Origin: Anthoceros angustus
Taxonomy: Eukaryota; Plantae; Anthocerotophyta
DNA length: 64,000 bases
NCBI GenBank assembly: GCA_010909165.1
Contig: MU008157.1
Location: 434,001-498,000, forward strand
Reading direction: 5' to 3'
This document shows, one piece after another, positions 12,961-53,957 of this stretch. Numbering within the stretch: the first letter of the stretch is position 1; each line of letters starts with the position of its first letter. The position numbers and the translations under genes are program-made. The notes under the pieces were generated by a model that had not been told where the DNA came from, searched no databases, and worked only from the letters and a program-made list of their open reading frames with translations.

Positions 12961-13694
12961 CCCCTTGATGCGCTGCCTTTTGGAAGGAATTCCATACCTA
13001 CTCCTCCATCTGGCTCAAAGCTAACCATGAGCTCCTCTCCTACGTGGATAGGTCTTTACCACATCTTTTCTACCCTCCATGCTCTTGAATCTTCTGACCC
13101 CGACCTCATGTTCTTCAACGCCAATCTCGTGGCTCGTGCCATTAGGAGGTCGAGAGATGGTACCACATGTACAACGCACCCTGCTGGAGATTTATTCTAT
13201 TTTGTACTATATACTAGTAGCAAATATAATGATATAAGTATGGGTCATTTTCAGCGGAAGTTAGCAAGTCTCTTTTCTTTGCATGCTTGAGACATCTTAG
13301 GTGCATGCTTCATAATGTCAATTGCCTGCTAGAGACATTACATGTGCAGGACCTAGGTGATTTAGGACCTTGATCTTTCTTATATTGATTTATTTTTTGA
13401 TTTATGTTGATGGATTGATGGCTTTGTTTTCATTTTTATTTGTGTTGATGAGTTGATATTTATTGGGCTTGGAATAAAAATATATTAATAATTATTACAA
13501 AGTAAAATATTATATGCAATGGAATTTGTACCTAATTACCTAGGTTTAATAGCTTACTCCAGAATTCTTGCTATTGGATAAAAAAAGAAAAAAAAATTAT
13601 CCTGTTGCCTTTTTCTACATTTCAACCTTTGTAAGAGACATTGTATTCAACAAAAAAATACGAAGTCTTCATAAATGTAAGTTATAGTACTATC

Positions 13695-14486
13695 ATGGAT
13701 TGTTGCTTATGTAGTTCTTCTGGAAATACTTATAGATCGCCTAGAAATACCATATGTATAAGTTGCTTTGAAGGTGGACGTACCATTCTGGATCTATCAC
13801 GAAAATTAGAGCATGAGTGGAGAGATGACGATCTTGATAAAGCCAAATCTTTAGGGATTAGACAAGGGGGTCTTGCTCAAGCTTTCAAAGTTATGAAGCA
13901 ATTAGAGCAATTAGAAGAAGAAACTTCTGAAAAGCTCGAGTTCTTAGAATCTTTAGTTGAAGCATTTAGAGAAGGTGCTCATTCAGATGTGGAAATAAAG
14001 ACTAATGATGGTCTTTCAATCCAAGCCCATAGAGTTGTCATGGCAACAAAATCCCCAGTCTTTAAGGCTATGTTTGAGTCTGATTATTGTAAGGAGGCTC
14101 ATAAAGGGGCAATTCAAATTCAAGAATTAAGCCACGCCCAGATGAAACACCTACTAGAATTTTTGTATTGTGCTGAAATTCCAGAAGAAGCCATGGCCCA
14201 ACATGCACATGCTCTTCTAATTGCAGCCGACAAGTACGATATTCCTGTATTGGGAAAAGTTTGTGAGTCATATATAGCCACAACTATCTCCTCTTCAAAT
14301 GTTTTAGAAGTTATCGAACTAGCAACTCTTTGCTCTGCTAGTATATTGAAAGATACAGCTATCGGAGTGATTTTAAAGAGCTATGATGACATAGTTTTTT
14401 CAAAGGAATATGAAGACTTTGCAATGAAAAATTCTCTTCTTGCTGTGGAAATCACTAAAGCCCTTATTCGTGATCTAAAGAAATAG
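13695..14486 (+). CDS. BTB/POZ domain protein (At3g56230-like), intronless
   Basis: MDCCLCSSSGNTYRSPRNTICISCFEGGR N-terminus, then BTB core SDVEIKTNDGLSIQAHRVVMATKSPVFKAMF...LLEFLY...LLIAADKYDIPVLGKVCE and a BACK-like tail. The ORF is open for 263 codons. Confidence 0.9.
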   Translation: MDCCLCSSSGNTYRSPRNTICISCFEGGRTILDLSRKLEHEWRDDDLDKAKSLGIRQGGLAQAFKVMKQLEQLEEETSEKLEFLESLVEAFREGAHSDVEIKTNDGLSIQAHRVVMATKSPVFKAMFESDYCKEAHKGAIQIQELSHAQMKHLLEFLYCAEIPEEAMAQHAHALLIAADKYDIPVLGKVCESYIATTISSSNVLEVIELATLCSASILKDTAIGVILKSYDDIVFSKEYEDFAMKNSLLAVEITKALIRDLKK

Positions 14487-15999: not shown

Positions 16000-17505
16000 A
16001 TGGAGGGGAGCGCGGTGGAGTCGGCAGTGGTGAAGATGATGGTGTTGCAGATGCCCATGGCGCCGGTGGTGGTGATGCTCTACGCGGTGCTGTTCGCTCT
16101 GGTGTGCGCGTCCGACAAGGAGAAGCAGCAGGAGAGGGAGCAGCAGCAGCAGCAGCACGGAGGAGGAGGAAGCAGTAGCGGAGGATCCCGAGCCTGCAAG
16201 CTCCCGAGGAAAGCCACCTCCTGGAAGCTGTTGCGCAGCAGAGCGCGGCGCATGGACGAGGCGAACAGGAACCGGCAGTGGAGGCGGCGCTACCGCGTCT
16301 CCTTCCCGGCCTTCACCTTGCTGGTGGCTGAGCTGCGGCCTTTCCTGCAGCAGGCGCAGCAGCAGGCGGCGGCGGCAGGGGAGTGCGCCCCGGTGGAGGT
16401 GGAGCGGGTCGTGGCCATGGTGCTGCACCGCCTGGCGCACGGCCTGCCCCCCGCCGCCATCGCCGATCTCTACGCCGTCTCCCCGGCCGCCGTGGCCTGC
16501 TTCACCCGCCTGGTGACGCACGCGCTCGCCAGCCGCGGCAAGCTCTACTCCAGGTACGTGCAGGCGCCGGCGGGAAGGCGGTTGCGCAGGATCGCGCTCG
16601 GCTTCCAGGCCGCCACTGGCCTGCCTAATGTCTGCGGCGCCATCGACGGGACTCACGTCCGGCTCAGCCAGATCCCTTCCCCGGATTCCTCCCCCGCAAG
16701 GTACTGGACTCAGCACGGGTTCTACAGCGTGCTGCTCCAGGGCGTGTGCGATGCCGACTGCGTCTTCTGGGACGTGTGCTGTAACGGGCCGGGCGGGCTG
16801 GGGGACGCGGCGCACTTGAGGTCTAGTCGGCTGTGGAGCAAGCTGATGGAAGGCGGGGAGCTGGCGGAGCCGCTGGAGGTGGTAGATGGGAGGGAGGTGA
16901 GGCCGTACTTGGTTGGGGATTCCGCGTACCCGCTGCTCCCGTTTCTTATCACGCCATTCGCTGGCGGGAGTCCGGGGCGGGAGGATCAGGGCAACAGCGT
17001 GTGCCATCTCAACTCCTTCGACGCGCAGCTGAGCAAGGGGAGGGAGCGGATCGGGGCCGCGTTCGGGATGCTCAAGAGCAGGTGGCGGATTATGAGGAAC
17101 ATGGACGTAGGGTTGCAGTACGCGGCTCAGACCGCCGTTGCCTGCTGCGTGCTTCATAATTTTTGTCAGCTGCACGGGGAGCCTGTGCCGGGAAGGGATC
17201 CTGTCGACCCGCACCCGAACCTTAACATGGAGGACAGGATCCCGGTTCCTGAGGATGAGAGGTATCTTGCGAGCTTTGGCCAGGAGACCAGGCTCGCCTT
17301 GTACAGGGATTGGCTGGGGAGGCGAGGTGAGGAGGAGGAGGAGGAGGAGGAGGAGGAAGAAGAAGAAGAGGAGGAGGAGGAAGCAGAGCAAGGGCAGGAG
17401 GAGGATGGGGAGGGGTTAGGGGGAACCATGGAACAGCCTGACCATGAGGTGAACAATATTTTTCGTTTCATGCGGGAGTTCTGTGCGAGATCAGGTCATG
17501 TCTAG
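16000..17505 (+). CDS. Harbinger/PIF transposase-derived nuclease (HARBI1/ALP1-like, DDE_Tnp_4), intronless
   Basis: Motifs VAMVLHRLAHG, LPNVCGAIDGTHV, VLLQGVCD..VFWDVC..GPG, YLVGDSAYPLLPFL, FDAQLSKGR..IGAAFGMLKSRWRIM and ACCVLHNFC. The 501-aa ORF is intact and no TIRs are seen nearby. From memory it most resembles the At3g19120-type domesticated clade. Confidence 0.9.
   Translation: MEGSAVESAVVKMMVLQMPMAPVVVMLYAVLFALVCASDKEKQQEREQQQQQHGGGGSSSGGSRACKLPRKATSWKLLRSRARRMDEANRNRQWRRRYRVSFPAFTLLVAELRPFLQQAQQQAAAAGECAPVEVERVVAMVLHRLAHGLPPAAIADLYAVSPAAVACFTRLVTHALASRGKLYSRYVQAPAGRRLRRIALGFQAATGLPNVCGAIDGTHVRLSQIPSPDSSPARYWTQHGFYSVLLQGVCDADCVFWDVCCNGPGGLGDAAHLRSSRLWSKLMEGGELAEPLEVVDGREVRPYLVGDSAYPLLPFLITPFAGGSPGREDQGNSVCHLNSFDAQLSKGRERIGAAFGMLKSRWRIMRNMDVGLQYAAQTAVACCVLHNFCQLHGEPVPGRDPVDPHPNLNMEDRIPVPEDERYLASFGQETRLALYRDWLGRRGEEEEEEEEEEEEEEEEEEAEQGQEEDGEGLGGTMEQPDHEVNNIFRFMREFCARSGHV
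17329..17382 (+). repeat. (GAG/GAA)n coding microsatellite, 18 Glu
   Basis: In-frame poly-Glu run near the C-terminus of the ALP1-like protein. Confidence 0.95.
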
Positions 17506-22962: not shown

Positions 22963-24555
22963 CTTGCTACGCTCTCCAGATTGAAATGATCCCCTATGAT
23001 TCAACAATCTGGAGAGGCTTGAGGACAGTCAAACCAAGTAGTGCCTCTTCAAAACAGCCTTTGACGATGCAGTCCGCAACACTGTCAATTCTGCTTGGTA
23101 GCCACCTAGTACGCGAGCACCGAGAAGAGCGAAGAATTCAAGATCCTAAGGATCTAACAATGGCCAACCTCGTCCGACCTCTTCAACTGTCTCACTCCCC
23201 CCTCTGCGGATCAGGTTCGTGTGTGATCGGCTCCTTAGATGTCTGGCCAGGAATTGCACCAGAATCGGTGAACAGAACAATTCTTCTGTCCCGAGATCTT
23301 GATCCGCAACTCCCATAAAGCACCCGCATGCCTCGGCACCATCAGAGCTGACAATCTGAGCATACAATATGTGACTGGAACTATTCGCCCAAGGCCACAC
23401 GATTCATGGCCTATACATAAATTTCCCTGCTACCGCATATCCGCGTGGATCCTCTAGGCACACATTGTCAAGTCGAAAGAAGCAGCGTGGTAGAGAAAAC
23501 TGCATGCCTCAGGCACCATCCAATGTGAAGCTCCACCTCGCGCCAAGTAGCAAAGGCTGGCCCGACAAGCCATGACAAGGAGTCAATTGTGGGAGATGGG
23601 TGGATCCTTCCACCGAATTGCCGCTGGGTTGCTCCACGTTTTCCTCCTCCTCCTTCCTTCATTCCTCCCCTCCCGCTCCCTTCGTGTAAACATATAGGTT
23701 AAAACATGTCATATATTTCAATGTTCGTTATCATTTTTGAGGTGTATTTGATTATAAGTACATATAAGGCCGCTCACTAAAATTCGTCGGGGTTTAATGC
23801 TTGGTTGGCCTGATGTGGTGGGGCCTACCATCTGTCTCTCACATCCGTGACTTGCGACCGGGAGCGCGAGCCGGGAGCCGGGTGAGTGCACTATGTGAAC
23901 ACACGGAAACATAGTGACTGTTGCGAACACATGGGCACATACATGAGAACAGGATAGCCATTCGGCACATCAAGCACACATATGAGAATAGGGACGCATC
24001 CCGTGTGAGTGGCGAAGAACCCAAAGATGTAGAGCACGCGGGAGTGAGGCCTGGTATACGAGATGCACGTTGTCGTACATATTTTCTGCGGGACATAACC
24101 GAATTTTTGTACAGGGTAATCAAATTGAAGCTTGTCTGAAGGGCGACAAGATGAGCTATTGCTCAAAGCAAAAAACATAGAGCATTCGGGGTTGAGGCCT
24201 GGTAACAGAGATGCCCATTTTCGTTCATAACTTATGGTAGACACAACCAAAATGTAATACATGGTAATCAAATTGAAGCTTGTCTAGAGGGCTACAGAAT
24301 GAGCTATAGCTCATTTCGTGTAAACGTATGTGGAACACGTACTCAGAGTTTGAAATTCAGAGAGCACAAATTATTTATCGGGCAATTCTGACGAACATTA
24401 ATATCCAAGTTCGCATACAGATAGCTAAACATGATGAGTTTGAAACTGGCTTTCCAATGACCTATCTTACAAAATTTATAGCCAAGTAAGGCATGAAATA
24501 GCCACAAATCTCATCCTTCCCTCTCCTCAAGATAACTACTTTCAGCACCTTGGTG

Positions 24556-25577
24556 CAACACCTCTAGCATCTTTGGCTTCCAACGGTTGGGGGCTTCCAA
24601 GTAGTCATCTCCACAATACTTTTTTTCCTCTTCAGATTATCCAAAGCCATTGTCCAATTTGAGTAAATGGCCTTGAAATGTGGACACTGCACCATGGGCA
24701 CATTTTTGTGCCTGCAACTGTTTAACTAGGAGAAGCAACGTAGAAGTTGCTGCATGAGTATGTTGGAGCAAGGAAGCATCAGCATGCATCATTCCCCACA
24801 CTTCTTTCCATATATTTTTGAAGCTCTGGTATGAAGCAACGGCCTTCACTTGTGGCTTTACGTTGCCAAATGGCAGGCAATTGGCAATGATTCAGTGTCT
24901 TCCTGAGTTGTGAAAATAGGCGTGTCTGCCTCCTCGTGCACCGCTTGTTCACCAGGCATATGTACTGGTCCAACAGAATGCAGAGAGACATGGACATATC
25001 CTCTTCTAGCCATAGCTGTAACTAGCTCATGTGTGGATACCAGTTCCCCTTTGAGGTGTAATATCTTAGCTTGGTGCTTGCAAGAGAAACCTTGAGTGCC
25101 TCTGGGATAATTATAGCAGGTCCAATATGCACTTACATTGAAGATGGTATAGATCAACTTCCGATCAGTGCAACTCCTCACAAAAGATGGTCCATCAATT
25201 GTGGTTGGTAATGTGACAGTTGAGTCGGGAATGGATTGGAAACCCAAGATTGCATTGTCCACGATTGCTGCTTCCCTTACATTGTACCTGAATCCATGCT
25301 CCTTTGTGAAATGCTTATACCAGTAGATTTTGCTTACTGTTTCCATGTTGTGTGGAGCAACCAATCCAACCGTCTTCCTCGCAGGCTAACAAAATCATGG
25401 CACAACAGAGACTTTAAAAACCCATGCCAAGCTTCGATAGCAGAGTTACAATCTTGGCCTGCGTGCCTCATAGTTCTAATACCCTTTAACCTTAAGGGAA
25501 GCACATTGTGCCATTGTTTCTTGAAATACCCAATGAAACTCGGAGCTCTGTCTCCAAATTTATCTATATACACTTAT
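24556..25577 (-). pseudogene. MULE transposase, C-terminal half (catalytic E region + SWIM finger)
   Basis: YIDKFGDRAPSFIGYFKKQWH...AGQDCNSAIEAWHGFLKSLL...RLDWLLH...SIPDSTVTL...WTC...QGFSCKHQAKI, with frameshifts. Confidence 0.8.
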
Positions 25578-27014: not shown

Positions 27015-28005
27015 CCTTGGTGCAACACCTCTAGCATCTTTGGCTTCACGGGTTGCAGCTTCCAAGTAGTCATCTCCACAATACTTTTTCCTCTTCAGAA
27101 TCTCCAAAGCCATTGTCCAATTTGAGTAAATGGCCTTGAAATGTGGACATCGCACCATGGGCACATTTTGTGCCCGCAATGTTCGTTATCATTTTGAGGT
27201 GTATTTGATTATAAGTACATATAAGGCCGCTCACTAAAATTCGTCGGGGTTTAATGCTTGGTTGGCCTGATGTGGTGGGGCCTACCATCTGTCTCTCACA
27301 TCCGTGACTTGCGACCGGGAGCGCGAGCTGGAGCCGGGTGAGTGCACTATGAACACATGGAAACATACGTGACCGTGGCGAACACATGGGCACATACATG
27401 AGAACGGGATGGCCATTCGGCACATCATGCACTTATATGAGAACGGGGACACATCCCATGTGAGTGGCGAAGAACCCAAAGATGTAGAGCACGCGGGAGT
27501 GAGGCCTGGTATACGAGATGCACATTGTCGTACATATTTTCTGCTGGACATAACCGAATTTTGGTACAGGGTAATCAAATTGAAGCTTGTTTGAAGGGCG
27601 ACAGGATGAGCTATTGCGCAAAGCTAAAAACATGGAGCATTCGGGGTTGGGGCATGGTAACAGAGATGCACATTTTCGTTCATAACTTATGCTAGACACA
27701 ACCAAAATATAATACAGGGCAATCAAATGGAAGCTTGTCTAGAGGGCTACAGAACGAGCTATAGCTCATTTCGTGTAAACGTATGTGGAACACGTACTCG
27801 AGTTTGAAATTCAGAGAGCACAAATTGTTCATCGGGCAATTCTGAACATCAATATCCAAGTTCGCATACAGATAGCTAAACATGATGAGTTTGAAACTGG
27901 CTTTCCAATGACCTATCTTACAAAATTTATAGCCAAGTAAGGCATGAAATAGCCACAAATCTCATCCTTCCTCTCCTCAAGATAACTACTTTCAGCACCT
28001 TGGTG
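27015..28005 (+). repeat. Circularly permuted copy of 23719-24717
   Basis: The order here is segment B (native 24556-24717) then segment A (native 23722-24555), joined at CAA and bounded by CCTTGGTG microhomologies. Confidence 0.85.
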
Positions 28006-29333: not shown

Positions 29334-31759
29334 TGTGGACTACGGACTTCCTGGGGGTTAGAAATTAGGTAGGATTTTGTTTTTGTGGGAGCGAAGGATA
29401 GAATGAGGCTAAAAGGAGGAAATAAGCCCGTTAGCACTGGACGACCGAGTATACTCCGACCGGAGTGAGGAACGACTTAGACCTACGATGGCGGCGATGC
29501 GGGTAAGTCCCGACACCTGTGACCAAGGTGATAAGTACGCCAGGAAGTAACTTAGAAGTTGGACGGACTGACGGGCGACGCCACGTGACGACCGAGTGGA
29601 GGACGGCATGCAGCCTGTGATCAACCTGCCGAGGCCGTTATAGCAGTATTCACGCCTGCGCGCGCGCGAGGGGCCGAGGCACGCGCGAGTAAGGCCGTGC
29701 ACGCTGGCAACAGAGGGGCCGAGTAAGCCATGCACTGGCGCCAAGTGAAGAGGCGCGCCCGCCGTTACTCCCAAGGCGTGGTCGCGGAAGAAGGTCATTT
29801 CACGCAGCCGAGACAATTTCGCGATCTCGCGCCCGCACCGCTCGCGGTATCTCGTGGACACTGACGTTTCGCGCGCGCTCACCGCTGAGGTCGAGAAGCG
29901 AACGCGCGGAGGCTCAACGCTGCCAGCCTCGACAAGCGGCATGCGAACCAAGGAGGAGAAGGCGATGGCACCCAAAAGCCCGGAAGTTTGGGAGCCATGG
30001 AACCTTGTGGAGCGCAACATTGTGACCCGCGCTATCCGGACTTTGGGCTCGCCCGTGGAAGCGGAGAATTGGTGCAGAGTGGCATTTGGACGTGTTCCAA
30101 ATGGTCTGACCTTGAGGCCACCGTCCGGAGTTTGCCCGGAAGATGCGGCGGTCAACAAGGAGGTGCGGTCCAAGAACCTCCGAGGGACCAAGGCGATGGA
30201 CCTTGAGGTCCCGGCGGCCTACAACCCCCCAAGGAGGAAGAGGGGAGGGTGCCGAGCCCTCAAGGCGGGGAAGATAGGTCCAGCCACGCTAAGGCTCGAC
30301 GAACGGACCACCAACGGTTCGATATCCGCTGATGCCGAGTCGGCGGCCGATCATCCATCGAACCTACTACCAAGGTGGATCACCTTGGTGATAATCTATT
30401 GGTGTTCCCGACGCGCTGAAGAGGGGATCGGGAAGGATTATCTTCACCGTTTAGCTGTGAAGCTCGCAAGCTCAGAGCGAGAAGCCTCGCCATCTGTCCC
30501 CATACCGATCCATGTATGGGGCATTTCAACTCCTGTGGAAGGAGAGCTTGAGCGAGCGCCCGGAAGGACCGAGGCCTCCCGAAGTGGAGCGGCAAGGGCG
30601 CCGGAGGAGGAGGCCGGCCGACAAAACCAAACGGACTCGGAGGAGGACGATCGAGAGGATTCCTGACCCATACGCCTGAACGGACCCCCTCACCACCTGT
30701 GGGGAAGCACCCGCCTCCTTCCGTGCCCCAACTGTAACACCACCCACAGAAGGGCCCCGCCTCACCCCTGGCCATCACTCCGAGGAGCCCACTGTGAGAG
30801 AGCCAAGAAACGCAAGACCACGGCTACCAACGCGGCTGGTGCCAAGACTCTTCCCGACGGAGTGGCAAGAAGCGGAGGAAGGAAGGAGGGAGGGCCAGAG
30901 TGGAGGAGGACACCGCAGATCCAGAGCCGGGTCCGCTGTGAAGGGGCAAAGGGCGTGCTCCTGACTCCATCACCTCCGCCGAGCCCTGTGGAGGAAAAGG
31001 GCGAGAAGGAGCTCGCCAAAAGGAGGGGAAGCTCGAGCCAAGACTCGTGACCTAAGGGTCCCGATTGTCCGGAGAACCCGACTTGCTCCGGATCGGTATG
31101 GAGGTCCTTGACGATCGGAGATGCCGGCCCCGCAACGGACTTTGTGGGAGCCTCACTGCCAGCCGTGGAGGAAACACGGTGGGTTCCACCGGGCCATGGA
31201 CCTGGGTCCAAGGGATGGCCGAGAAGGAGAGGAAGCCACCCGAGGCATGGTGCCTGTGAGGCTGGAGGGAGGTGAGGCGAGAAGGAAGGCCAAGCTCTCG
31301 GCAGGATTGAGGAAGGAAAACGCCGAGGCGGAGAGGGAGGTCCGTCCATCCAAGGACCGGACCAAATTCTTCACCGGAGGAACATGAAGCAGCAAGGAGG
31401 CCCAAGCGGCGGAGGACCTCGCAGTGCAGGGGCGAGCGCAGCAGAAGAGGACGCCCGGGCGCAAGCGAACGGGCGCGGATCTCGCGAGGCAGACGACCAG
31501 AGCCAAGCCGGAGAGGCTCAGTGAAGGTGGCCAGGCGGAGGCCACGGCGGCCGATCGCGATCACTATCGGCGTGATCGAACCGGTGGAGGAGGCGGCCGA
31601 GAGAGCCGCGCCAATCAAGGCCGAGCAAGTGGTCATGGAGCAAGCACGGCCGAGCCGTGAGGAGGCGCTGGAGGCCCACCCGGAGATTGGGGACCCTGTG
31701 GTGCACGCAGGAGGTAGAAGGGCGGCAGAGCCGGAGGACAACAAGGACACTTGGAGTTG

Positions 31760-33235
31760 CAACCCGAACTTAGTCCGGACCTTCAACAACATCGTCGTAA
31801 ATAACACTTTTGGACATGCCACAAGCAATAACACCTTTGGGCCATCCGCCCCATACATTGTGAATGGCTGCACGCAGGTACCGCATCGTCTACGGAAAAG
31901 GCACTTGGTTGCCATTAGGGGCGGGTACCAACTATAGTCCTTGGCTTGCAACCAAGACTCAATATCTACTGTTGTCCCACTATCTGTAACAATCCAAGCA
32001 ACAAGCACTCCGTTATAGTAACGATCAAACACCAAAAGTGTATACAAGTGAAACTTGTATTTGTTGGTCCCAAATGTGGCGTCCATGGATATGACATTCC
32101 TATTCCCAAACTGCAAAATCATGGAACGCTAGAAATCAGTTTGCAAGCTAATCACTAAGTGGGAGGAAAGTAGAATTGAAATCATAAGCTAGTGATTATG
32201 AACCTTGTCGCGCTGATTTTTTACAGCCACACGACATTAACAACATTGCCTCTCAATTGTTTGCGGGAATCTATCAGTATCACTCCAACGATGAGATTAG
32301 TGTTGGTTTGTGGATAGAGGCTCACAAGGACCTTGTCTGGTATATATCATTTTGTGTTCCACATGCTCGAGGTATATTTGCCTCTTTGTTACTGCAGCTA
32401 GAGCGTTGTCTCACGCAATGCGGATGTCCTCTCTTAAAGCGGGCAAACCTTGAGCGAGGTCTCCAATATCTTGTCCGTGGAGGATTTGTCGTATTGGTCT
32501 ACATGTTCAAATGAATCACAAAACACAAGCGCGATTTGTGGCGGAATATGATTGCGTCACATCAAAGTAATCACAGCAGAACCATGTTTGATACTCTGAC
32601 CTCTCAAGATCTTGGCTTTCCGTTTTCCTACACTGCTTGAAGCCTGTTCTGCTGCATTATCATCACGAAGATCAGCTTTCCCAAATGCACACCAGTATTT
32701 CATGTGGCACAAATAAGCCCAAACATTAGTTTTACGGCTGCTGTTGGAGGCGACTTGCTTCTTATCCACCTCCTTCCAAAAGTATATGGGGAACTGCGCA
32801 TTCTTGCCTTCTCCTAACACCAAGTCAGACACCCTGTTCCATGGAATAATGGCAAATCTAGAGATAGCAGGTACGCAATCCTTAGAAGCAACCTCATACC
32901 GTCTTGCTATAACAGTGGGTGAAAACTTCAGATGTATTGAACAAGCCACGTGGCTAACACCTCCCAACCGTAGGGGAAGATCTTCAATCATCTTAGTTGC
33001 CATTGCAAGTCATTCGGTGTTAGGAACATGGGCTGCGGAGGTATTGCTTAATCGAGTTTAGTGTGGAAGTGAACACCAAAAATGATGCTTACTTTCCATT
33101 TCAAATGGAAACATGTTTTAGGGTTTGTTTCCTGCAATTCTGAGTTCTATGGCATGCATGCCATGAGCAAGCACACATGGTCATAGCATGAGCTCATGCT
33201 CATGACATGAGGCATGACATGAGCAGGCGCCAAAG
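31760..33235 (-). pseudogene. MULE transposase N-terminal half, copy 1
   Basis: MATKMIEDLP...FAIIPWNRVSDLVLGEG...YWCAFG, then MILQFGNRNVISMDATFGTNKYKFHLYTLLVFDRYYNGVLVAWIVTDSGTTVDIESWLQA (MULE first catalytic D motif DxTFGTN). Confidence 0.85.
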
Positions 33236-33285
33236 ACTGGCAGGCCACACGGCAGAGGAGGAGAGAGAAGAGGGAGGACGAGGAA

Positions 33286-35544
33286 GACTTGGTGGTGATC
33301 GCCGCCGTGCCGCCACGGTGGCGCAGGCTGCACTGAAGAGGAAGGGCCCCGCCGCGATCATCCGATTGGGTGCGCCGCACATGTGGCCCGCCGTGCCAAG
33401 AAGGAATGAGGGGCTATCCCACCCCACCACCGACGGCGATAGGGAATAGGTGGTAGTAGGCGGTGGTTAGGCACACCGAAATGGCCCTCACCGTAATAGA
33501 GGTGTAAAGGCGCCGACCTTCGCGAGTATAAGAGGGCCAAGGCCACCAATAAATCATCTTCTCTTGGTGTTGATGCCGCTGCTGCACCTTTGTGTGTCTT
33601 CTTGCTAACGTGAGTCCCGAGTCACCGAAAGGTGCAATGGCGCCTACACCGGGAGTGGTCCCGTGACGGACCTAACGTGTTGGTGTGTGCAGGAAGGGTG
33701 AGGTGACCCGTGCTCGTCCGGAGCCGCCCAGACCGAACCGGATCGAACGTGAGCCGAGGAACTCCGGAGGCGGCATGCCCAGAGAGGTCCTGACTTTGTC
33801 CGGACTGAGAGGAAGGCCGGATCCCGAGGTCCCCTCAAGGAAGTCCGACTTAGGGATCCAGACTCAGTGACGAGTCCCACCCGAGGTCCGACCCTGTGGG
33901 AAGGTTGGGTCCAGAAGACCGGACCCCAGAGGCAAGTCCGGTCCCCGAGGACCGGACTCCAGAAAGAAGGCCGGGCCCAGGAGACCGGACCCCAGAGGGA
34001 AGACCGGACCTAGAGGTCCGGACTCCGGAGTCGAGACAGGGTCCTGAGGTCCAAACTCGGGGAGTGGGGGAGAGCCACCAGTCACCAACCCCAGCAGATC
34101 CAACCCTTGGAGGGCCCACTGCGCAGGGGCCCGCCGGAGAGAGACTTAGTGGTGGGCCCCACTAGATCAAGGCAACTTCGCATTAAACCCCCGACAAACT
34201 ATAGTGTCCGGGCGTATAAGCATGTAAGAATAGTCTATTCTACAGGCTTCCCTTGGAGCGCCTCGCGCAGGACTCCCGAATGAAGCAACCTGGACTTTGT
34301 TCCTTTTTCTTCCCCAGTGGTATCTCCATCACTCTAGAGGTGGGAATTCAGGTCACAGGGAGGTTGCCTCTCGGCTCCGCCATTTTCGGGCGGGGACTGG
34401 TAGGCTCTTTAGGAAGGGGGGGCTTGCTGCTCGATCAAGGATGGAGTCGCAGTCGGGTTTGTCAAGACCCGTGAAGGCGCATCTCAAAGGTGCCTCACGC
34501 AGTCATGAGGCAAGTAGAAATTCCAGGGGCCGGTGAGATCATGGTGTCGGATCGCTTGTGGAGCCGACCAATTTTCCTTTCCCAACCCATTGTCTAACAG
34601 TGTGTCTAATTAAGGTGAGGGTGGCACGAGGAGGGGTCATGTGGCCCAAGGAGGGGTCTGTGTGGCCCAAGGAGGGGTCTGGCCCAAGGAGGGTCTGTGG
34701 CCCAAGGAGGGGTGCATGTGGCCCAAGTGAGGCTGTGGCCCAAGGTGAGGTCTGTGTGGCTGAGGGAGTGCAGGTGGCCCAAGGAGGGGTCTCATGGCCC
34801 AAGGAGGGGTCTGTGGCCCGAGAGAGGAGGATGCTGGGAACATCTTGTGCAAGGTGGTGTATGAGGTCCTAGAAGAAAGGGGTGAGTGAGTCGTTGTGTG
34901 AAGGGAGTCAGGAAGTGGTGGCCGAGAGTGGAACGCGGGCAGCCGAGGAAGGTTGGGAATAAATTGTGGGGTCGAGGAAATCGGTGGAGTGAGGTGCATG
35001 ACGTGCTTGGCCATGGTGTACATCCACCAGTGAGCTCAGGCGTGAATCCACATGAGTGTGACTTGGTGGTGATCGCCGCCGTGCCGCCACGGTGGCGCAG
35101 GCTGCACTGAAGAGGAAGGGCCCCGCCGCGATCATCCGATTGGGTGCGCCGCACATGTGGCCCGCCGTGCCAAGAAGGAATGAGGGGCTATCCCACCCCA
35201 CCACCGACGGCGATAGGGAATAGGTGGTAGTAGGCGGTGGTTAGGCACACCGAAATGGCCCTCACCGTAATAGAGGTGTAAAGGCGCCGACCTTCGCGAG
35301 TATAAGAGGGCCAAGGCCACCAATAAATCATCTTCTCTTGGTGTTGATGCCGCTGCTGCACCTTTGTGTGTCTTCTTGCTAACGTGAGTCCCGAGTCACC
35401 GAAAGGTGCAATGGCGCCTACACCGGGAGTGGTCCCGTGACGGACCTAACGTGTTGGTGTGTGCAGGAAGGGTGAGGTGACCCGTGCTCGTCCGGAGCCG
35501 CCCAGACCGAACCGGATCGAACGTGAGCCGAGGAACTCCGGAGG
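33286..35544. repeat. Apparently identical 485-bp direct repeat pair (33286-33770 and 35060-35544)
   Basis: The two copies read identically by eye and give identical ORF translations (33358-33549 and 35132-35323). Confidence 0.9.
34630..34820. repeat. 21-bp minisatellite GTGGCCCAAGGAGGGGTCTGT (copy in duplicated flank)
   Basis: About 8-9 degenerate units within the 34139-35066 block, which duplicates 37464-38383. Confidence 0.85.
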
Positions 35545-37420: not shown

Positions 37421-37919
37421 GGCGCCAAAGACCGGCAGGCCATGCCGGTGGCAACGGGGAGGAGAGAGACTTAGTGGTGGGCCCCACTAGATCAAGGCAA
37501 CTTCGCATTAAACCCCCGACAAACTATAGTGTCCGGGCGTATAAGCATGTAAGAATAGTCTATTCTACAAAGGCTTCCTTGAGCGCCTCGAGACTGAAGC
37601 AAAGGACTTTGTTCCTTTTTCTTCCCAGTGGTATCTCCATCACTCTAGAGGTGGGAATTCAGTCACGGGGAGGTTGCCTCTGCCCGCCATTTTCTGACGG
37701 TAGGCTCTTTAGGAAGGGGGGGCTTGCTGCTCGATCAAGGATGGAGTCAGCCAAGCTTGATCAGGTTTGTCAAGACCCCGTGAAGGCGCATCTCAAAAGG
37801 TGCCTCGCTCACGCAGGCAAGTAAATTCAGGAGGTGTGAGATCGGGTGCGGATCGCTGTGGAGCCGACCATTGTTTTTCCTTTCCCAACCCGCTGTCTAA
37901 CCAGATTGTGTCTAATTAA

Positions 37920-38130
37920 GGTGAGGTCTGTGTGGCCTGAGGGAGGGGTCTGTGTGGCCCAAGGAGGGGTCTGTGTGGCCCAAGGAGGGGTCTGTGTGGC
38001 CCAAGGAGGGGTCTGTGTGGCCCAAGTGAGGCCTGTGTGGCCCAAGGTGAGGTCTGTGTGGCCTGAGGGAGGGGTCTGTGTGGCCCAAGGAGGGGTCTGT
38101 GTGGCCCAAGGAGGGGTCTGTGGCCCGAGA
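37920..38130. repeat. 21-bp minisatellite GTGGCCCAAGGAGGGGTCTGT
   Basis: About 10 units; source of the QTPPWAT repeat ORFs. Confidence 0.9.
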
Positions 38131-38483
38131 GAGGAGGATGCATGGGAACATCTTGTGCAAAGTGGTGTATGAGGTCCTAGAAGAAAGGGGTGAGTGAGTC
38201 GTTGTGTGAAGGAGTCAGGAAGTGGTGAGCGCGAGAGTTCGAAAACGAACGCTGAGGAAGGTTGGGAATAAATTGTGGGGTCAGAGGAAATCAGTGACGG
38301 AGTGAGGTGCCGCGACGTGCTTGGCCATGGTGTACATCCACCAGTGAGCTCTGGGCGTGAATCCACATGAGTGTGACTTGGTGTACATGTGAATCTGTGT
38401 GCATAGGACCATAGCCCTTAACGAGCGTAGCAGGGGAACCGGGTGCCAAATAGTCAATCGCGACGCCGGCGCGTCGGTGGGTC

Positions 38484-38725
38484 CCACCACGGCGGTGGCG
38501 AATCCACCACGGCGGTGGCGGAACCCACCACGCGGTGGCGGAACCCACCACGGCGGTGGCGGAATCCACCACGGCGGTGGCGAATCCACCACGGCGGTGG
38601 CCGAATCCACCACGGCGGTGGCCGAATCCATCACGGCGGTGGCCGAATCCACCACGGCGGTGACCGAATCCACCACGTCGGTGGCCGAACCCACCACGGC
38701 GGTGGTCGAACTTACCACGGTCGTG
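38484..38725. repeat. 21-bp minisatellite CCACCACGGCGGTGGCCGAAT, ~11 copies
   Basis: Tandem units with no spacers; each unit contains the mini-stem CCACC/GGTGG. Confidence 0.9.
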
Positions 38726-38894
38726 GGCTCGGACAAGGTAGTTGATTATGGCTGGGTAGGAACTGATTGTAGGAGGACTAGAATCCATAGTTTTGGAACA
38801 TCTTGACACAAAACCATTCCCTTGGGATCGAATCCTAGGACTATAACGACATAGAGGGTAAATGTGGCCTCTTTGCGTCTTCGGATGCAAAAAC

Positions 38895-39110
38895 CCATTC
38901 CACAGTCGGTGACAACCACGTCCGCAACCGAGACCTCGTCCCCCCTCGTCAAGAAAAACTTAGCTCTAATACAGACGTCATTGAGCAGAGTATATCGTCG
39001 CTCCTTGAAAGGGAAGAAAATGCTCTCCTTGGCCATCAAGAACATGACGTCTCGGACGGCGTCGTGTATAGCAATACGTTGTCCATCCATTGGACAACGC
39101 GCTGGGGCCC
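38895..39110 (-). mobile_element. C-terminal fragment of a restriction-like-endonuclease (RLE) non-LTR retrotransposon (CRE/R2-like)
   Basis: RCPMDGQRIAIHDAVRDVMFLMAKE...R...DEVSVADVVVTD resembles the CCHC-RHD and PD..D-type motif region of RLE LINEs. Confidence 0.65.
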
Positions 39111-42062
39111 AAGGTCTAAGGACTCTTTGGCACATATTACAGTTCGAGGCCCAAGGACTAATTATTTGTAAAAGTAATATTGTCATGGGCCAAGGACCAA
39201 TTTTAGTATAAAAGGCCTTGCCTCGGACATTTCTAAGCACTCCATCACACAAAACATAAGAAAAACAAAAAAAACATTCAATAGTCCGGGGAGGGTTAGT
39301 GTACATGTGGTCTTCCACATACTCCCTTCTCATTTGTTGGCGTCCTCGCCAACTTATTGATAGGGCCACAAATGCATAGCAAGAGAGCTCCCCTGTGGAT
39401 CCCCACACCGCGGTTCCCATTGCGGAGTCAAGCACAGAGACTCCCTCCACCGAAGGGCCGTGCTAATAATATAGGTTAGTTGGGGAACCATAGAAAGAGC
39501 GAACAAAAGGAATAAGACTTGCCAGTTGCCCGTCCGCATCTTTAAGCTCTTGGAAGATGGCCGCCCTGGGTACAATGTTGAAAGCGTTCTCAACATCGAC
39601 CTGAAGGGCAACCCAATCTAGATGTAGCTGAAGAATCGCCTCGACTTCAAAACTCACCATTTCGAAGCCTCCCGGGGTGGCAATGCCAAATTGATGGGGG
39701 CTAAGATGAGCCCGAAATTACTCCATGAGCTGGAGGGCAATGCTGCAACTAATAAGACGTGGGAATGCCTCTCCCATAGCGATAGGGCGCACCCTCGGTG
39801 TGGGCTTCTCCATAGCCAAAAGCCTGCTGGCCCCCAACACTCGTGACATCCGTTGGGGGGTCTCCCCCTGCGCCACAGCCGCTGCCAGGAGGATAAAGAG
39901 CTCTGAAAAACCACTAGAAAGATTCTCATGAGATTCACTAGAAAGATTCTCTAGAGAAATAGTCACGGAGGTGAGGCAGTTCGAAGACCCCAAGAGAGGC
40001 GGCGCACAGGCGGGAAGAGAGGAGGCCACTTACGGGTCGCCCAACCTAGAGAGGTCGTCGATATGCGCAAGATCCTCTTTCAAAGAAGCATCCACAAATT
40101 CCCGTATAAAGCTCGGGGCCCCGACCGGGACTTCAAGGCCTGCAGCCCTTATGGAGAATCAATATCCCCTCCCACCTCCTCGGGATAATGAAGAGGGGGT
40201 ATAATACCGGACGGGGACCAAACCTTGCACTTCAAGGTTTTGACTTTCAGGCCAAGGCGAGAGAGCTTCAAGGAGAAGTGGTCAAAAGCATCTTTGACTT
40301 TGTCCACCGACCCAAGGATGTAGGTGTCGTCGGCCACCGATGGAAAGAGGCACTCCCAAGAGGGAGGCGTTATTGATAATACTTTTTAACTCGCCAACCA
40401 ACTGGTTGGCAAAAGCGATATTCAAATCTGCGGTGGATGGAACCATTGTCAAAACCTCCGGGACCTGAGCGGACCCATCCACACTGCTCGTCACCCATAA
40501 CCGTTTTTACCGTCCGGTCCCATTCGATATAACTTGGTCTTGTGTGTCTTACGAGCGGTCGCGAGTAATGGACATCTTCTTGTACCTTAGAGAGGTTTTG
40601 AGGAATTTGGCGATGCCGATATACTCACAAATTTCAGATCGTCGATTTGTGAAGCTCTTTCTCCCTTCTCATTCGAGGCCATCTCGTCTCCTTCCCCTCT
40701 TGAATTGGGTTTGGCCCTCTGCCTCCCATCAGCAGATCTCAATAAGCGCCTCCTTGAGCATCTTGATCCACACATCTTGAGTTGTCTTCATCACAAACTT
40801 TCCCTTCGCTTTGTCATCCCGACAAACACGCTTAGTCTGAAAAGGTTTCTCCTTGCCTTGCTCCAGCGGATTTCTGATGATGATGATGTGGCTGGCTTGC
40901 CTCTAGTCGCAGTGGTGACACCGCAATGGTTGGTTCCGGCGTGGATGAGCAGAGGAGAAACAACAACATGTGACGAGAGAGAGGCGGGAAGGATCCACCC
41001 AAAGATGAAGTACGACCTTCCGTGGTGAATCACAAGTATGGTGCGGTTTAAGGAGACAAATGAACCAAGCGGCGATCAAGGGAGTAGATGGGACATTATT
41101 CAAAAACTCTAAATCCTCGTCCGTGACCAGATTCATCGTGGAATATTGTTTACCCCTCTGATCCGCGCTCACCTCGCTTCTCGGGTAATTTTGAATTGAT
41201 CTTTGGAAAGATATTTTGTGCAATGCTTTAACTGTCAAGAACTGTTTATAATGACCTACCATAAGGTATTGGCCACATAAACTATTGGATGTTGGGAGCA
41301 ACAATCTCAATCTTCAATCCTGATTTCCTTGATCTTGGATGCCAACTTCTCGTTGAGAACATCAAAGCTTGCTTGAGTTGCATGTTAGAATTCTCGTCTG
41401 GAGGATTCGGCCGTGGTGAGTATCTCCTTGAGTTGCGTTCGGTCGGCTGGAACCAACATCGTTGTAGGAATCTCGGTGTCTCCCCAAGAAGAGGAATCAT
41501 GTGGGGTCTTGGTGGTGCGGGGATTGCAGGGCCTGAGGCAGACGTGATCCATGCAGGCTTGCCTCTATCGTCATTCCCTCCTGTGCTCTCAGGAATCGTC
41601 CCAGCTGGGATCCCAAATTTGGAGATCCCTTTGTTTGGAGTTCACGGTAGTTCGCGCGGCCCCCCATTGACCACATTCTTGTTTGTCCTTCCCCACAAGA
41701 GAATATACCTGACGTCAATTGGAATTGTCCTAGGGTGTTGCTGTGTCTTAGCATCAGCATGACCGCCCGACTGCCAGATCCACCAGACATATTAGGAGTG
41801 AATAAGACATCATTGAGCTCGATACCATGTGAAGTTGGTAGTAGCGGGCGAGAGAGGCGAAAAGCCTTGTGCGTGAAGAATACCAAAAAGCAATTGAATT
41901 GTGTAATGAACAAAATTGTCTCAAGAGAGACACTCAAGGGTCTCTTATACATCCAAGGCCATAGCTCACTTTCCCAAAGGTTCTAAAGATGGCTAACCTA
42001 CCTCCAAAGGTTCTAAAGATGGCTAACTTACCACAAGCGCCTACCAATTGTATCTATTCACA
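39110..42062 (-). mobile_element. LTR retrotransposon 5' part (LTR + PBS-Met + degenerate gag), copy 1
   Basis: 235-bp LTR 41828-42062 with TGTGAA...TTCACA ends. On the minus strand it is followed by TGGTATCGAGC (PBS for tRNA-iMet), then a frameshifted gag-like ORF with a coiled coil. No pol or 3' LTR. Superfamily is uncertain (gypsy-like). Confidence 0.75.
39354..40378 (-). mobile_element. Non-LTR reverse-transcriptase fragment, circularly permuted, flanked by TTATTGATA direct repeats
   Basis: Motifs HLRD, SRLLAMEK..RVRPIAMGE, LSPHQFG, ALQVDVENAFN and GDP (39360-40020) lie downstream on the minus strand of ADDTYILG, KCKVWSP and EVPVGAPSFI (40030-40370). Confidence 0.85.
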
Positions 42063-42734
42063 AGCTTCCTAGCACCTTATCCTCTAATCCAAGTGAAAGC
42101 CTCGACCTATGATGCCGCCCTCTAAAAATCAGTAGCGCTTGCCTCGTGGCCGCCTAGCCCTGCGGCCCATGGGTGTTCCCCGCCTCCTACCACGCCCGAT
42201 CCGAAGATCCTCCCTTAATATCTCCACCTCACTCCCTATCCGAGGTCCCTTCACTCCTCCTAGGAGGCGCCGCCCGCCATCGCCTCGACGCTTCTCGCCT
42301 CCTCATCATGCCCAAACAAGGCCTTCCATCCATGCTCTAGCCTCCCTTGCTCATTTCCTCGAGCACAACCGTGAAGGGTATGCCTCCCCGTGGACAATCG
42401 GGCTGGCCGCTCGAACTGAGGGAGTTGCATCCTCCCGGCCCCGACGGTGGCTTCCCCACCTTGGGTCCTTCTTCCGACGATGGCCGGCTCCACCACCGTG
42501 GTGGCCCATGACTGGCTTTAGCGGTGGTTGTTTGACCACTGCGTGGGCTGTTGCTACCCTTCTTGATTTATGCCTCTCTCTTGACCACGCCCTAGCCTCA
42601 CCTCTCTCCCGCTTATACCTCTCCGCTAGCTTCTTGAACTTCTCCGGAGGTGCAGGCGTCTCCACTTGTTCACAGGCCCTTCTTTGAATGAAGGATCCCC
42701 ACCTTATATAGACAATTTTTATTCCTAAAATCCC

Positions 42735-44620
42735 AAGGTCTAAGGACTCTTTGGCACATATTCAGTTCGAGGCCCAAGGACTAATTATTTGTAAAAGTAA
42801 TATTGTCATGGGCCAAGGACCAATTTTAGTATAAAAGGCCTTGCCTCGGACATTTCCTAAGCACCCCATCACACAAAACATAAGAAAAACAAAAAAAACA
42901 TTCAAACTAACAGTCCAGGGGAGGGTTAGTGTACATGTGGACTTCCACATACTCCCCTTCTCATTTGTTGGCATCCTCGCCAACTTATTGATAATACTTT
43001 TTAACTCGCCAACCGGTTGGCAAAGCGTATTCAATCTGCGGTGGATGGAACCATTGTGGAAAACCTCCGGGACCGAATGGACCCATCCACAGGTCGTCAT
43101 AACGTTTTTACCGTCCGGTCCCATTCGATATAACTTGGTCTTGTGTCTCTTCTGAGCAGTCGAGTAATGAATGACATCTTCTTAGAGAGGTTTTGAGGAA
43201 TTTGGCGGTGCCCATACTCACAAATTTCGGATCGTCGGTTTGTGAAGCTCTTTCTCCCTTCTCATTCGAGGCCATCTCGTCTCCCTTCCCCTCTTGAATT
43301 GGGTTTGGCCTCTCCTCCCTCACCGCCAATGATCTCAATAAGCGCCTCCTTGAGCATACCATCCATGCCGAGTTGTCTTCATCACAAACTTTCCCTTCGC
43401 TTGTCATCCCGACAAACACGCTTAGTATGTAAAAGGTTTCTCCTTGCCTTGCTCGCGCCAAAGATTTCGCATGATGATGAGGAAATGTGTAGGCGCTCAT
43501 AGCCTCTAAGAGGACCACCGCAATGGTTGGTTCCGACGTGGATGAACGAGAGGAGAAACAACAACATGACGACAGGAGAGAGAGAGAGGCGAGGAAGGAT
43601 CCACCCAAAGATGAAGTACGACCTTCCGTGGTGAATCACAAGTATGGTGACAGTTTTAAGGAGACAAATGAACCAAACGCGCAGCGATCAAGGGAGTAGA
43701 TGGGACATTATTCAAAAACTCTAAATCCTCGTCCGGTGACCAGTATTCATCAGTGGAATATTGTTTACCCCTACAAGTCCGCGCTCACCTCGCGCTTCTC
43801 GGGTAATTTTGAATTGATGCTGGAAAGATATTTTGTGCAACTGTTTCACTGCTGCAACCTGTTTATAGCCAGCCTTACCATAAGGTATTGGCCACATGAA
43901 GCCTGCTGGATGTTGGGAGCAGCAATCTCCAATCTTTGCAGGTAATCAGTGATTTCCTTGATCTTGGATGCCAACTTCTCGTTGAGAACATCAAAGCTTG
44001 CTTGAGTTTGCATGTTATTAACGAGAATTCTCGTCTGGAGGGATTCAGCCGTGGTGAGTATCTCCTTGAGAGTTGCGTTCAGTCGGCTGGAACCAACATC
44101 GTTGTAGGAATCTCGAGGGGTGTCTCCCCAAGAAGAGGAATTCACAGGCCGTGGGGGTCTTGGTGGTGCGGGGATTGCACGGGGCCAAGTGATCCAGCTT
44201 GCCTCTATCCTTATCCCTCTGTGCTCTCGGTAGGTCGGTCCAGGCACAGGATCCCAAATTTGGAGATCCCTTTGTTGGAGTTCACGAAGTAGTTCGGCGC
44301 GCTCCCTGTCGCTGGACCAATTCTTGTTGTGGAGCCCGGTCCTTCCCACAAGAGAATATGCTACGGCGTTCAATTCGGCTGGAATTGTCCTAGGGGTCTG
44401 TTGTGTGTCTTCGCATCTGTAAAAACGCGAGCCACGCCCCTGACTAACAGATCCACCACGCCGAGGCATAATTAGGAGTGAGAATAAGACATCAGAACAT
44501 TGAGCTCTGATACCATGTGAAGTTGGTAGTAGCAGAAGGCGAGAGCCGAGAGAGCGAAAAGCCTTGTGCGTGAAGAATACCAAAAAAGCAATTGAATTGT
44601 GTAATGAACAAAATTGTCTT
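42735..44620 (-). mobile_element. Tandem second copy of the same LTR element (truncated LTR 44516-44620, perfect PBS TGGTATCAGAGC)
   Basis: Paralogous to 39110-39362 plus 40370-41920. It lacks the 1-kb RT insert and shows a single TTATTGATA at 42985-42993. Confidence 0.8.
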
Positions 44621-52199: not shown

Positions 52200-53957
52200 A
52201 GAGGTCCACACAAGTCTACATGAACGAACTCCAAAGGCTGAGAAGCCCTAAGAGCAGGAAGACCAGAGTAGGGAGAGCTCCGGCTTGGCAGCACACGCCT
52301 TCAGAGGTGGTGTCTTGGCCAAGGAGGGCAGCTTATCTCGATACAAGTCCTGCTGAGTCATGGCAAGGAGCTTGGCAGGATTGAGGTGCCCAAGTTGACA
52401 GTGCCAAAGTAGAGCATTAATATTCTTAGATGAAGGGAGCCCAGGTGGTGAGGCAACCTTAGAAGATGCCACCACTGAAGCAATTGTAGTGTACACAGGG
52501 GTGCCAGTGAAGATGTAGAGATCACTTCGGGGCTGCCCTCCTGCTACAACTCGCCCTGGCTGAGAGGAACGATAGAGGAAGCACTCCTTACGTCCAAACT
52601 CCAGCCGAAAAGCTCCATCAAGCAGAAGTTGGCGAACGGAAATCAAATTCTTAGCCATCTGCGGGACGTGGAGCACATTATTTAACACAAGGGAGGAATC
52701 ATCCTCCAGTGTGAATGTCACAGAACCAACTCTAGCAATGCCAAGGCTAGAGTCATCGCCCAACAGCACAAAACGTTGAGTATCAGTTGTCGCCGTGTAG
52801 GAAGTAAACATGTGCTTGGAGCTGCAGATATGGGCAGTGGTTGCGGAGTCCAGCAACCAGGAGGTCCTGAACTCTGAAGCTACCAAGCACACGGTTAAAT
52901 CAATCTCAGACTTGGACTGGTTCTTGGCCTTGGAGACGACAGCTGTATTAGCAGTCTTGATCTCACGCTTGGCCTCACCGGCCTGCTTCTTCCTGCACTC
53001 TCGCTCCCAGTGGCTGGGTGACTAACACCAATTGCACATCCCTTGACGTTTTGCAGGCTTGGAAGAGGAAGGGGCAGAAGGAGCAGCCTTTGATGTGCCG
53101 GAGTTGTTGTTTCTCCGAGGGTTGTTCCCTCTCTTCTGTTGTTGATTTTGTGACCATCCAGGAGTCACAAAATTACTCTCCACCGTGTTAGGATGTGCCG
53201 GAATTGTAGCGGGATGCCTCCTCCTGAAGGAGCGCGCTAGCAAGCTTGGACACTGATAGAATTGAGTGAATTTAGATAGGCCGAAAACCAGCATTTGCAT
53301 GGCTTGACGATCCAACTTGAGCCACGCATCAACCGCCGACTGAGGTGCGGTAGGCTTCGGGAAAACATCCTCCACCAGTGGGAGAAGATCACGCGTGTTG
53401 AGAGCCGTCTTCATCCGTCGAGACCAAATCTCATATTTGGTCCCGTTGAACTTATCTCTCTCTTTGAAGTCCATAGAGACGTTCACAACATTAATTACAG
53501 GAGCCAGAGATGGCGGAGGTGGTGGTGGGGTGCCTCCTGACATGGCCAAATCCTTGGCTCCACAAACACCAGCCACCTACAATGCATCAGCCGGATCCAG
53601 TGCTCCAGAATTGTTTTTCAAAACACCTGCCCCCTCAAAGCTCGACTCAATTCGTCGAACAGTCTCAGCAACATTCACTAAGTTAGTGCTAATGTGTGTG
53701 ATGGACTGCCAGAGAGATTGATAGTGTTGTGAGCGATGCTCTTGTGTAGAAGCTTGGGATTGAGCCTCGTTGTCCTTGAACTCCTTGTAGCCAGCTTCAA
53801 GAGTCTCGAACGCAGGAGAGCTTAAGGTTCTAGGTTCCTCCTTTACAGTAGCATAGGCAGGTTTCGATGAACTAGCATTGAAGTCATGTATCGGAGGCAA
53901 ACATCTCATGGACATAAACCTTGAGCTTGATGAGGATCTCCACCACAATCGCCACAA
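52200..53957 (-). mobile_element. Ty1/Copia gag-protease-GAG-pre-integrase remnant
   Basis: KFNGTKYEIWSRRMKTALNTRDLLPLVE, CNWC*SPSHWEREC (CCHC), WLLDSATTAHIC, LNNVLHVPQMAKNLISV and LWHCQLGHLN. Gag carries an internal deletion. Confidence 0.88.

Follow-up and report, generated by a model that had tools for sequence, protein, structure and literature searches.

The analysed DNA is a 64-kb stretch of the Anthoceros angustus genome, called the window throughout, and the locus was read from one assembly. It contains a repeat (the host repeat) that is interrupted by an insert, and a paralog of the same repeat that is not. The parts that define the interruption are as follows.

39108-39353, plus strand: left arm of the host repeat, with 95% identity to 42732-42984 and the hairpin GTTGGCG-TCCT-CGCCAAC (39336-39353) at its end
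39354-39362, plus strand: left 9-bp direct repeat TTATTGATA, at the edge of the homology with the paralog
40370-40378, plus strand: right 9-bp direct repeat TTATTGATA, at the edge of the homology with the paralog
40379-41921, plus strand: right arm of the host repeat, ~82-90% identical to 42994-44619; an AT-rich start is followed by the hairpin GCCAACC-AACT-GGTTGGC (40393-40410)
42732-44619, plus strand: paralogous copy of the host repeat whose site is empty, carrying a single TTATTGATA at 42985-42993

Alignment of the two host copies gave 95% identity between 39108-39362 and 42732-42993, and 82% (BLAST), or ~90% per aligned column, between 40370-41921 and 42985-44619. The indel between them consists of exactly 39363-40369 plus one 9-mer, corresponding to a period of 1016 bp. 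The insert itself (39363-40369, 1007 bp) lies between two copies of TTATTGATA and is missing from the paralog, which is continuous across its single copy at 42985-42993; this is the empty site. Short terminal homology and an empty target are both present, with the 9-mer occurring once in the paralog and twice at the insert.

In the 64-kb window, TTATTGATA has three exact occurrences (39354-39362, 40370-40378, and 42985-42993), and 0.44 copies are expected by chance in shuffled sequence of this window. These positions and the flank alignments confirmed what the first-pass annotation had stated, namely that a 9-mer is doubled around ~1 kb of reverse transcriptase (RT) sequence and single in the paralog. 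Other 9-base repeats within 2 kb are common by chance (five such pairs were listed); the weight of the TTATTGATA pair is in its exact position on the indel boundaries and not in mere repetition. The chance of an identity of 9 nt at both indel boundaries is ~4e-6. A 9-bp direct repeat around the insert is compatible with a target-site duplication as well as with shared microhomology.

The insertion site is AT-rich over 20 bases and has a 6-7-bp hairpin on either side. DNA folding of the empty site resulted in a z-score of -2.8, with 3 of 200 shuffles as good, and this prediction makes the hairpin-flanked AT-rich target a site where a break or a stalled fork is plausible. The paralog equivalents of the two short hairpins are located at 42967-42984 and 43008-43021. 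No protein family was detected in the host repeat by Pfam. At the left end of the repeat (39106-39202), a ~16-bp motif (GGCCCAAGGAC.AATT) is found three times, ~40 bp apart, followed by a TATAAAAGG box. The motif copies and the box look like transposon subterminal repeats or a promoter.

On its minus strand, the insert is a decayed fragment of a non-LTR (R2-like) reverse transcriptase. The motifs NAFN, GDP, and VADD are legible in the minus-strand translation, and the reading frame is broken by at least two frameshifts and four stops in 1 kb, so that the RT piece is dead. In an exhaustive protein search, an 83-residue piece of the insert matched 501 proteins with a top E-value of 8e-24. The Pfam model RVT_1 gave an E-value of 0.0069 on the insert fragment alone, which fails the cut-off; full-length relatives reach up to 6.6e-19 with the same model and are devoid of an AP-endonuclease domain. 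For one relative, P0020, R2 proteins were the sole matches among solved structures (PDB, 1e-6), and these matches are suggestive of an assignment of the insert RT to the R2 clade. The nearest named relatives are RT fragments from the liverwort Riccia fluitans (~49% identity).

The order of the RT domains was mapped with tblastn of 18 relatives and a family HMM built from 31 relatives. Permutation was judged by comparison with the domain order of the family's proteins and not with donor DNA. The insert is divided as listed below.

39363-39972, minus strand: piece B, RT domain 0/1 through domain 4 (GDP), HMM ~280-455; HMM scores 53.4 and 121.5, two in-frame stops and one frameshift
39912-39957, plus strand: imperfect 24-bp tandem duplication inside the start of piece B; the minus strand reads ..ENLSSES HENLSSG..
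39973-40032, minus strand: zone of the inner end-to-start (putatively circle-closing) fusion, from the end of piece A to the start of piece B, delimited by the homology
40033-40369, minus strand: piece A, RT domain 5 (VADD) through thumb, HMM 475-579; HMM scores 48.8 and 7.7, one frameshift and two stops

Along the minus strand, HMM positions 475-579 (VADD to thumb) come first, at 40355->40033, with the segments 475-532 and 538-579 both within this interval; positions ~280-455 follow at ~39972->39363. Within piece B, HMM 290-432 aligns to 39897->39466, pairwise matches reach 39972 upstream, and a frameshift carries the piece from the HMM match down to GDP at ~39400. The earlier observation that later RT domains precede earlier ones was borne out by both the tblastn and the HMM mapping, and the inner fusion proposed at ~40020-40030 is compatible with the mapped zone of 39973-40033. 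Extensions of the P0014 and P0026 tblastn matches into the flanks are low-identity run-ons.

Both junctions of the insert fall between RT domains 4 and 5. The two outer ends and the inner fusion are all internal to the RT, and the 3' end or tail of the element is absent at both junctions; therefore, this is not an ordinary LINE insertion. The canonical TPRT layout, with the 3' end at the junction and the sequence either collinear or inverted by twin priming, was not found either: the order is permuted and on one strand. In-place tandem duplication of a resident LINE was rejected, as the flanks have no DNA similarity to the insert (BLAST) and neither the flanks nor the paralog give an RT signal (HMM). 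The domain order supports a true cyclic permutation of one RT segment, placed at a site that is empty in the paralog.

The quality of closure was assessed from the spacing between GDP and YADD, which amounts to 27 or 28 residues in 42 of the 49 relatives with both motifs; 28 residues correspond to 84 nt. At the insert ends, GDP is followed by 33 nt and the left 9-mer, and the right 9-mer by 32 nt and VADD. When the ends are joined via one 9-mer, the spacing is 74 nt compared to the 84 nt of the family, i.e. 10 nt short with the frame off by 2; when joined without the 9-mer it is 65 nt, 19 nt short and out of frame. The first-pass annotation had stated that joining the flanks restores GDP...ADD continuity, which is only approximately the case. 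In family coordinates, the end of piece B and the start of piece A are ~4-7 codons apart, and the chance of such a closure for two independent adjacent fragments is ~0.006 by a rough estimate.

The residues that the 9-mers would encode correspond to no conserved RT position. If both 9-mers were counted as RT sequence, the spacing would be 83 nt and thus near 84 nt; this was judged a coincidence, since the paralog assigns at least one 9-mer to the host. The inexact closure requires either an earlier 10-nt deletion in the donor or a loss of 16-19 nt from the linearised piece. That the RT was cut exactly at its own TATCAATAA was an assumption of the annotation: no native LINE copy was found, and the spacing argues against exact closure. 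The 9-mer as native RT sequence is unproven, because no donor copy was found in the window or in protein databases.

Within the 64-kb window, neither a second DNA copy of the insert (BLAST) nor another RT of its family (family HMM) was detected, and no unique DNA-level source interval was found. Among 5.8 billion proteins, no close relative was retrieved, the best match having ~60% identity. In word-based protein searches, piece A gave no match and piece B matched one protein with 52% identity. One fragment assigned to the same RT family adjoins the left edge of the host repeat.

38902-39107, minus strand: C-terminal nuclease-like domain fragment of the insert's RT family (HMM 801-876); a weak match (score 10.4), lying at 39144->38902, with six relatives matching the same spot

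This fragment is on the same strand as the insert, 220 bp away, and could be what is left of a local donor LINE, or else a truncated and unrelated copy. Another weak match (iE 0.0012), to the N-terminal part of the LINE family (HMM 115-173), is found at 34261-34446 on the plus strand, i.e. the opposite strand, 5 kb off. Two further candidates were discarded. The minus-strand open reading frame 38746-39450 spans four unrelated segments and was attributed to chance, the sequence being T-rich. In the right flank, a candidate LINE remnant on the plus strand (P0014 residues 487-590 at 40639-40923, E 2e-4 to 4e-3) was backed by no other relative and not by the family HMM.

The wider surroundings are transposon-rich. 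They include a PIF/Harbinger DDE_Tnp_4 transposase (16000-17505, plus strand), a MULE transposase fragment (31052-32122, minus strand), copia gag/pre-integrase sequence (52248-52892, minus strand), and an open reading frame with a BTB domain (13641-14486, plus strand). Short tandem arrays with units of ~60-110 bp and 85-96% identity are located left of the LINE fragment, at 38470-38726 and 37918-38134. The segment 36004-38383 duplicates 31806-35068 at ~85%.

A companion case is found at 27 kb, and its donor was identified.

23719-24722, plus strand: companion donor, single by alignment, with its own CCTTGGTG at 24548-24555
27015-28005, plus strand: one-turn permuted copy of 23726-24722 by alignment to the donor, bounded by CCTTGGTG, in tandem repeat R

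The interval 27015-28005 consists of 24548-24722 followed by 23726-24555, and the donor lies 2.3 kb off on the same strand. The 8-mer CCTTGGTG is native to the donor and to the target; the latter is a ~340-bp tandem repeat whose units start with it (26673, 28326, and 30383). The companion insert starts and ends with the 8-mer, and closure is exact with zero bases missing. Its donor is not tandem, and the joint that would have closed the circle has ~7 bp of imperfect homology. The cargo is MULE-end DNA with intact non-coding sequence. Compared to the donor, the companion has 948 matches, 42 substitutions (25 transitions), and 16 gap columns, i.e. ~4% substitution divergence, and these substitutions argue for an old event rather than an artefact. 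By this alignment, the companion is a complete, old, one-turn insertion bounded by microhomology. It is a better specimen than the insert at 39 kb. Self-BLAST of the window gave no third permuted pair, and only the 27-kb case besides plain tandem repeats.

The idea that both cases reflect a recurring route via circles of ~1 kb, which the first-pass annotation had proposed, is supported by the companion donor, the native 8-mer, and the exact closure. Its reading of a permuted piece at an empty site is supported; the reciprocal crossover on 9 bp implied by its term Campbell-like is not required. The core sequences differ between the events (TTATTGATA at 39 kb vs. CCTTGGTG at 27 kb) and no recombinase was found in the host repeat, which argues against a recombinase acting at a fixed core, as in Campbell-type integration.

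The sequence shows directly that the RT order is permuted, that a repeat flanks the insert, that the site is empty in the paralog, and that another event of this design lies at a distance of 12 kb. The 39-kb insert probably represents one turn of a small circle, or of an equivalent concatemer, of a LINE piece placed in the host repeat. Since the companion displays the whole scheme 12 kb away, the same route is the most economical one for the 39-kb event. The source would have been a ~1.0-kb segment from within an R2-like LINE copy that was already decaying, reaching from the start of the RT to a point just beyond the thumb. Head-to-tail closure would have made this segment a small DNA circle or an equivalent concatemer, and one turn of this template would have entered the host repeat at TTATTGATA, in the AT-rich stretch between the hairpins. 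The junctions could have been resolved by annealing at microhomology shared with the circle, through ligation or copying, or by fill-in of a 9-nt staggered break that received a slightly trimmed linearised circle. Either route would leave the 9-mer on both sides, and the product would be a dead RT fragment in AB->BA order. We infer a circular intermediate, a DNA rather than an RNA template, and microhomology rather than a target-site duplication. A linear piece of nearly one full turn, flanked by a 9-bp target-site duplication, is an equally good fit. The sequence alone would be compatible with a circle, a tandem donor, or serial template switching.

Template switching without a free circle (FoSTeS/MMBIR type) seems unlikely to us, but leads to the same product. 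A nascent strand would leave the host at the 9-mer, copy the LINE from before ADD to past the thumb, jump back by ~1 kb, copy from the RT start to GDP, and re-anneal at the 9-mer, so that the LINE is copied in swapped order. The return at the 9-mer would be natural, as this is the sole homology with the original template; the hairpins beside the AT-rich target (z -2.8) could stall a fork, and the donor of the 27-kb case is nearby and on the same strand. An inexact closure is also easier to obtain when the strand leaves and re-enters the donor at different points. However, three ordered switches are needed, one of them backward, and the start and end points must fall a few codons apart in two independent events, exactly so at 27 kb, whereas a circle accomplishes this in one step. 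A chimeric LINE cDNA made by the RT itself, through internal priming and a template jump or by copying a circular RNA, is improbable, although the cargo is LINE RT sequence. In this scenario a staggered nick would turn the 9-mers into a true target-site duplication; a 9-bp duplication is typical of TPRT scars, and there is no need for the 9-mers to come from the RT, in keeping with the 19-nt gap. Template jumping is a known property of R2-type enzymes, and the family representative P0020 matches R2 proteins in the PDB. Against the cDNA, neither junction has a 3' end or tail, and the near-closure is unexplained unless the template was circular; moreover, the twin at 27 kb has MULE-end non-coding cargo and a donor-native 8-mer and needs no RT.

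The two remaining explanations concern the empty site and the assembly. The insert might predate the duplication of the host repeat, and the paralog might have lost it by deletion between the 9-bp repeats, so that the empty site is secondary. Deletions between short direct repeats are common in plants and are the exact reverse of circle integration, and the host copies, diverged by 5-18%, leave enough time. Nevertheless, we regard this as quite improbable: two events are needed instead of one, and the same permuted, 9-bp-flanked insertion must still come first. A loss changes only the timing and leaves the mechanism the same. A mis-assembly or read artefact is very improbable. Small homopolymer indels are indeed frequent between the copies, but known chimeras are inverted or simply joined pieces and not a one-turn permuted block with a perfect 9-bp repeat in sequence that is collinear elsewhere, and the twin event is 42 substitutions away from its donor.

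The preferred reading, one turn of a re-inserted circle, does not amount to the undescribed process that the first-pass annotation had suspected: the literature already gives AB->BA order with terminal microhomology as the signature of eccDNA reinsertion. The process is known in animals and rarely documented in plants; the present locus adds an instance from a new group of hosts. Scars of re-inserted circles are documented for cattle, humans, mice, and yeast, and the cattle colour-sidedness translocations are reportedly a case of eccDNA-type insertion. No report of circle re-insertion scars in a plant was found in the literature searched. The locus offers the filled and the empty site side by side and a better-resolved second example 12 kb away, and the two events together suggest that a genome-wide count in Anthoceros angustus is worthwhile. 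The insert also shows one origin of scrambled transposon fragments, which are able to confuse repeat annotation. Two events in one 64-kb window are the basis for a further, speculative and rather doubtful reading, according to which an unusually active germline pathway moves ~1-kb pieces of any DNA via small circles that are re-inserted at 8-9-bp microhomologies. If this were true, circle 'transposition' would contribute measurably to structural change in plants and to their scrambled transposon fragments.

Compared to known systems, LINE TPRT, including its 5' truncations and twin-priming inversions, shares with the 39-kb insert the LINE cargo and the short direct repeat of the target. The insert differs in that no 3' end is found at the junctions and in its cyclic shift on one strand, which is neither truncation nor inversion. 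In plants, filler DNA is captured at double-strand breaks. Yeast captures Ty1 cDNA and mitochondrial DNA at such breaks (PMC11372161). Break-captured filler and cDNA are alike in that ectopic DNA is patched into a break via microhomology, but the pieces are normally collinear with their source and a one-turn permutation does not characterise this class. Rice eccDNAs form at 7-15-bp direct repeats, reach 4.5 kb, and are enriched at transposons (PMC10948907). They demonstrate plant circles of up to several kb at short direct repeats; the rice work deals with free circles and the resulting deletions, whereas only the re-inserted scar is seen here.

The closest parallel in design is found in animals. 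That circle transposition shapes genomes was proposed earlier by Holt et al. (bioRxiv 10.1101/2022.06.22.497135). In the human germline, AB->BA order served as the criterion for eccDNA-mediated insertion, which applied to 82 of 327 source-resolved insertions in 1000 Genomes long-read data, and a mouse reporter was also used (bioRxiv 10.64898/2026.09.03.749254). Of the human AB->BA insertions, 28% have a terminal microhomology of ≥5 bp, and nearly all are nearby, intrachromosomal, and in donor orientation (bioRxiv 10.64898/2026.09.03.749254). The present case differs in its plant host and in its cargo of transposon fragments, a class that the human screen filtered out; in contrast to the source-resolved human insertions, closure at 39 kb is off by 10-19 nt, and the event is an old one, fixed in the assembly. 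The cyclic block shift, the short terminal microhomology or repeat, and the kilobase size are shared with the human, mouse, and cattle insertions, and the 27-kb companion additionally shares the nearby donor and the same orientation with the human ones.
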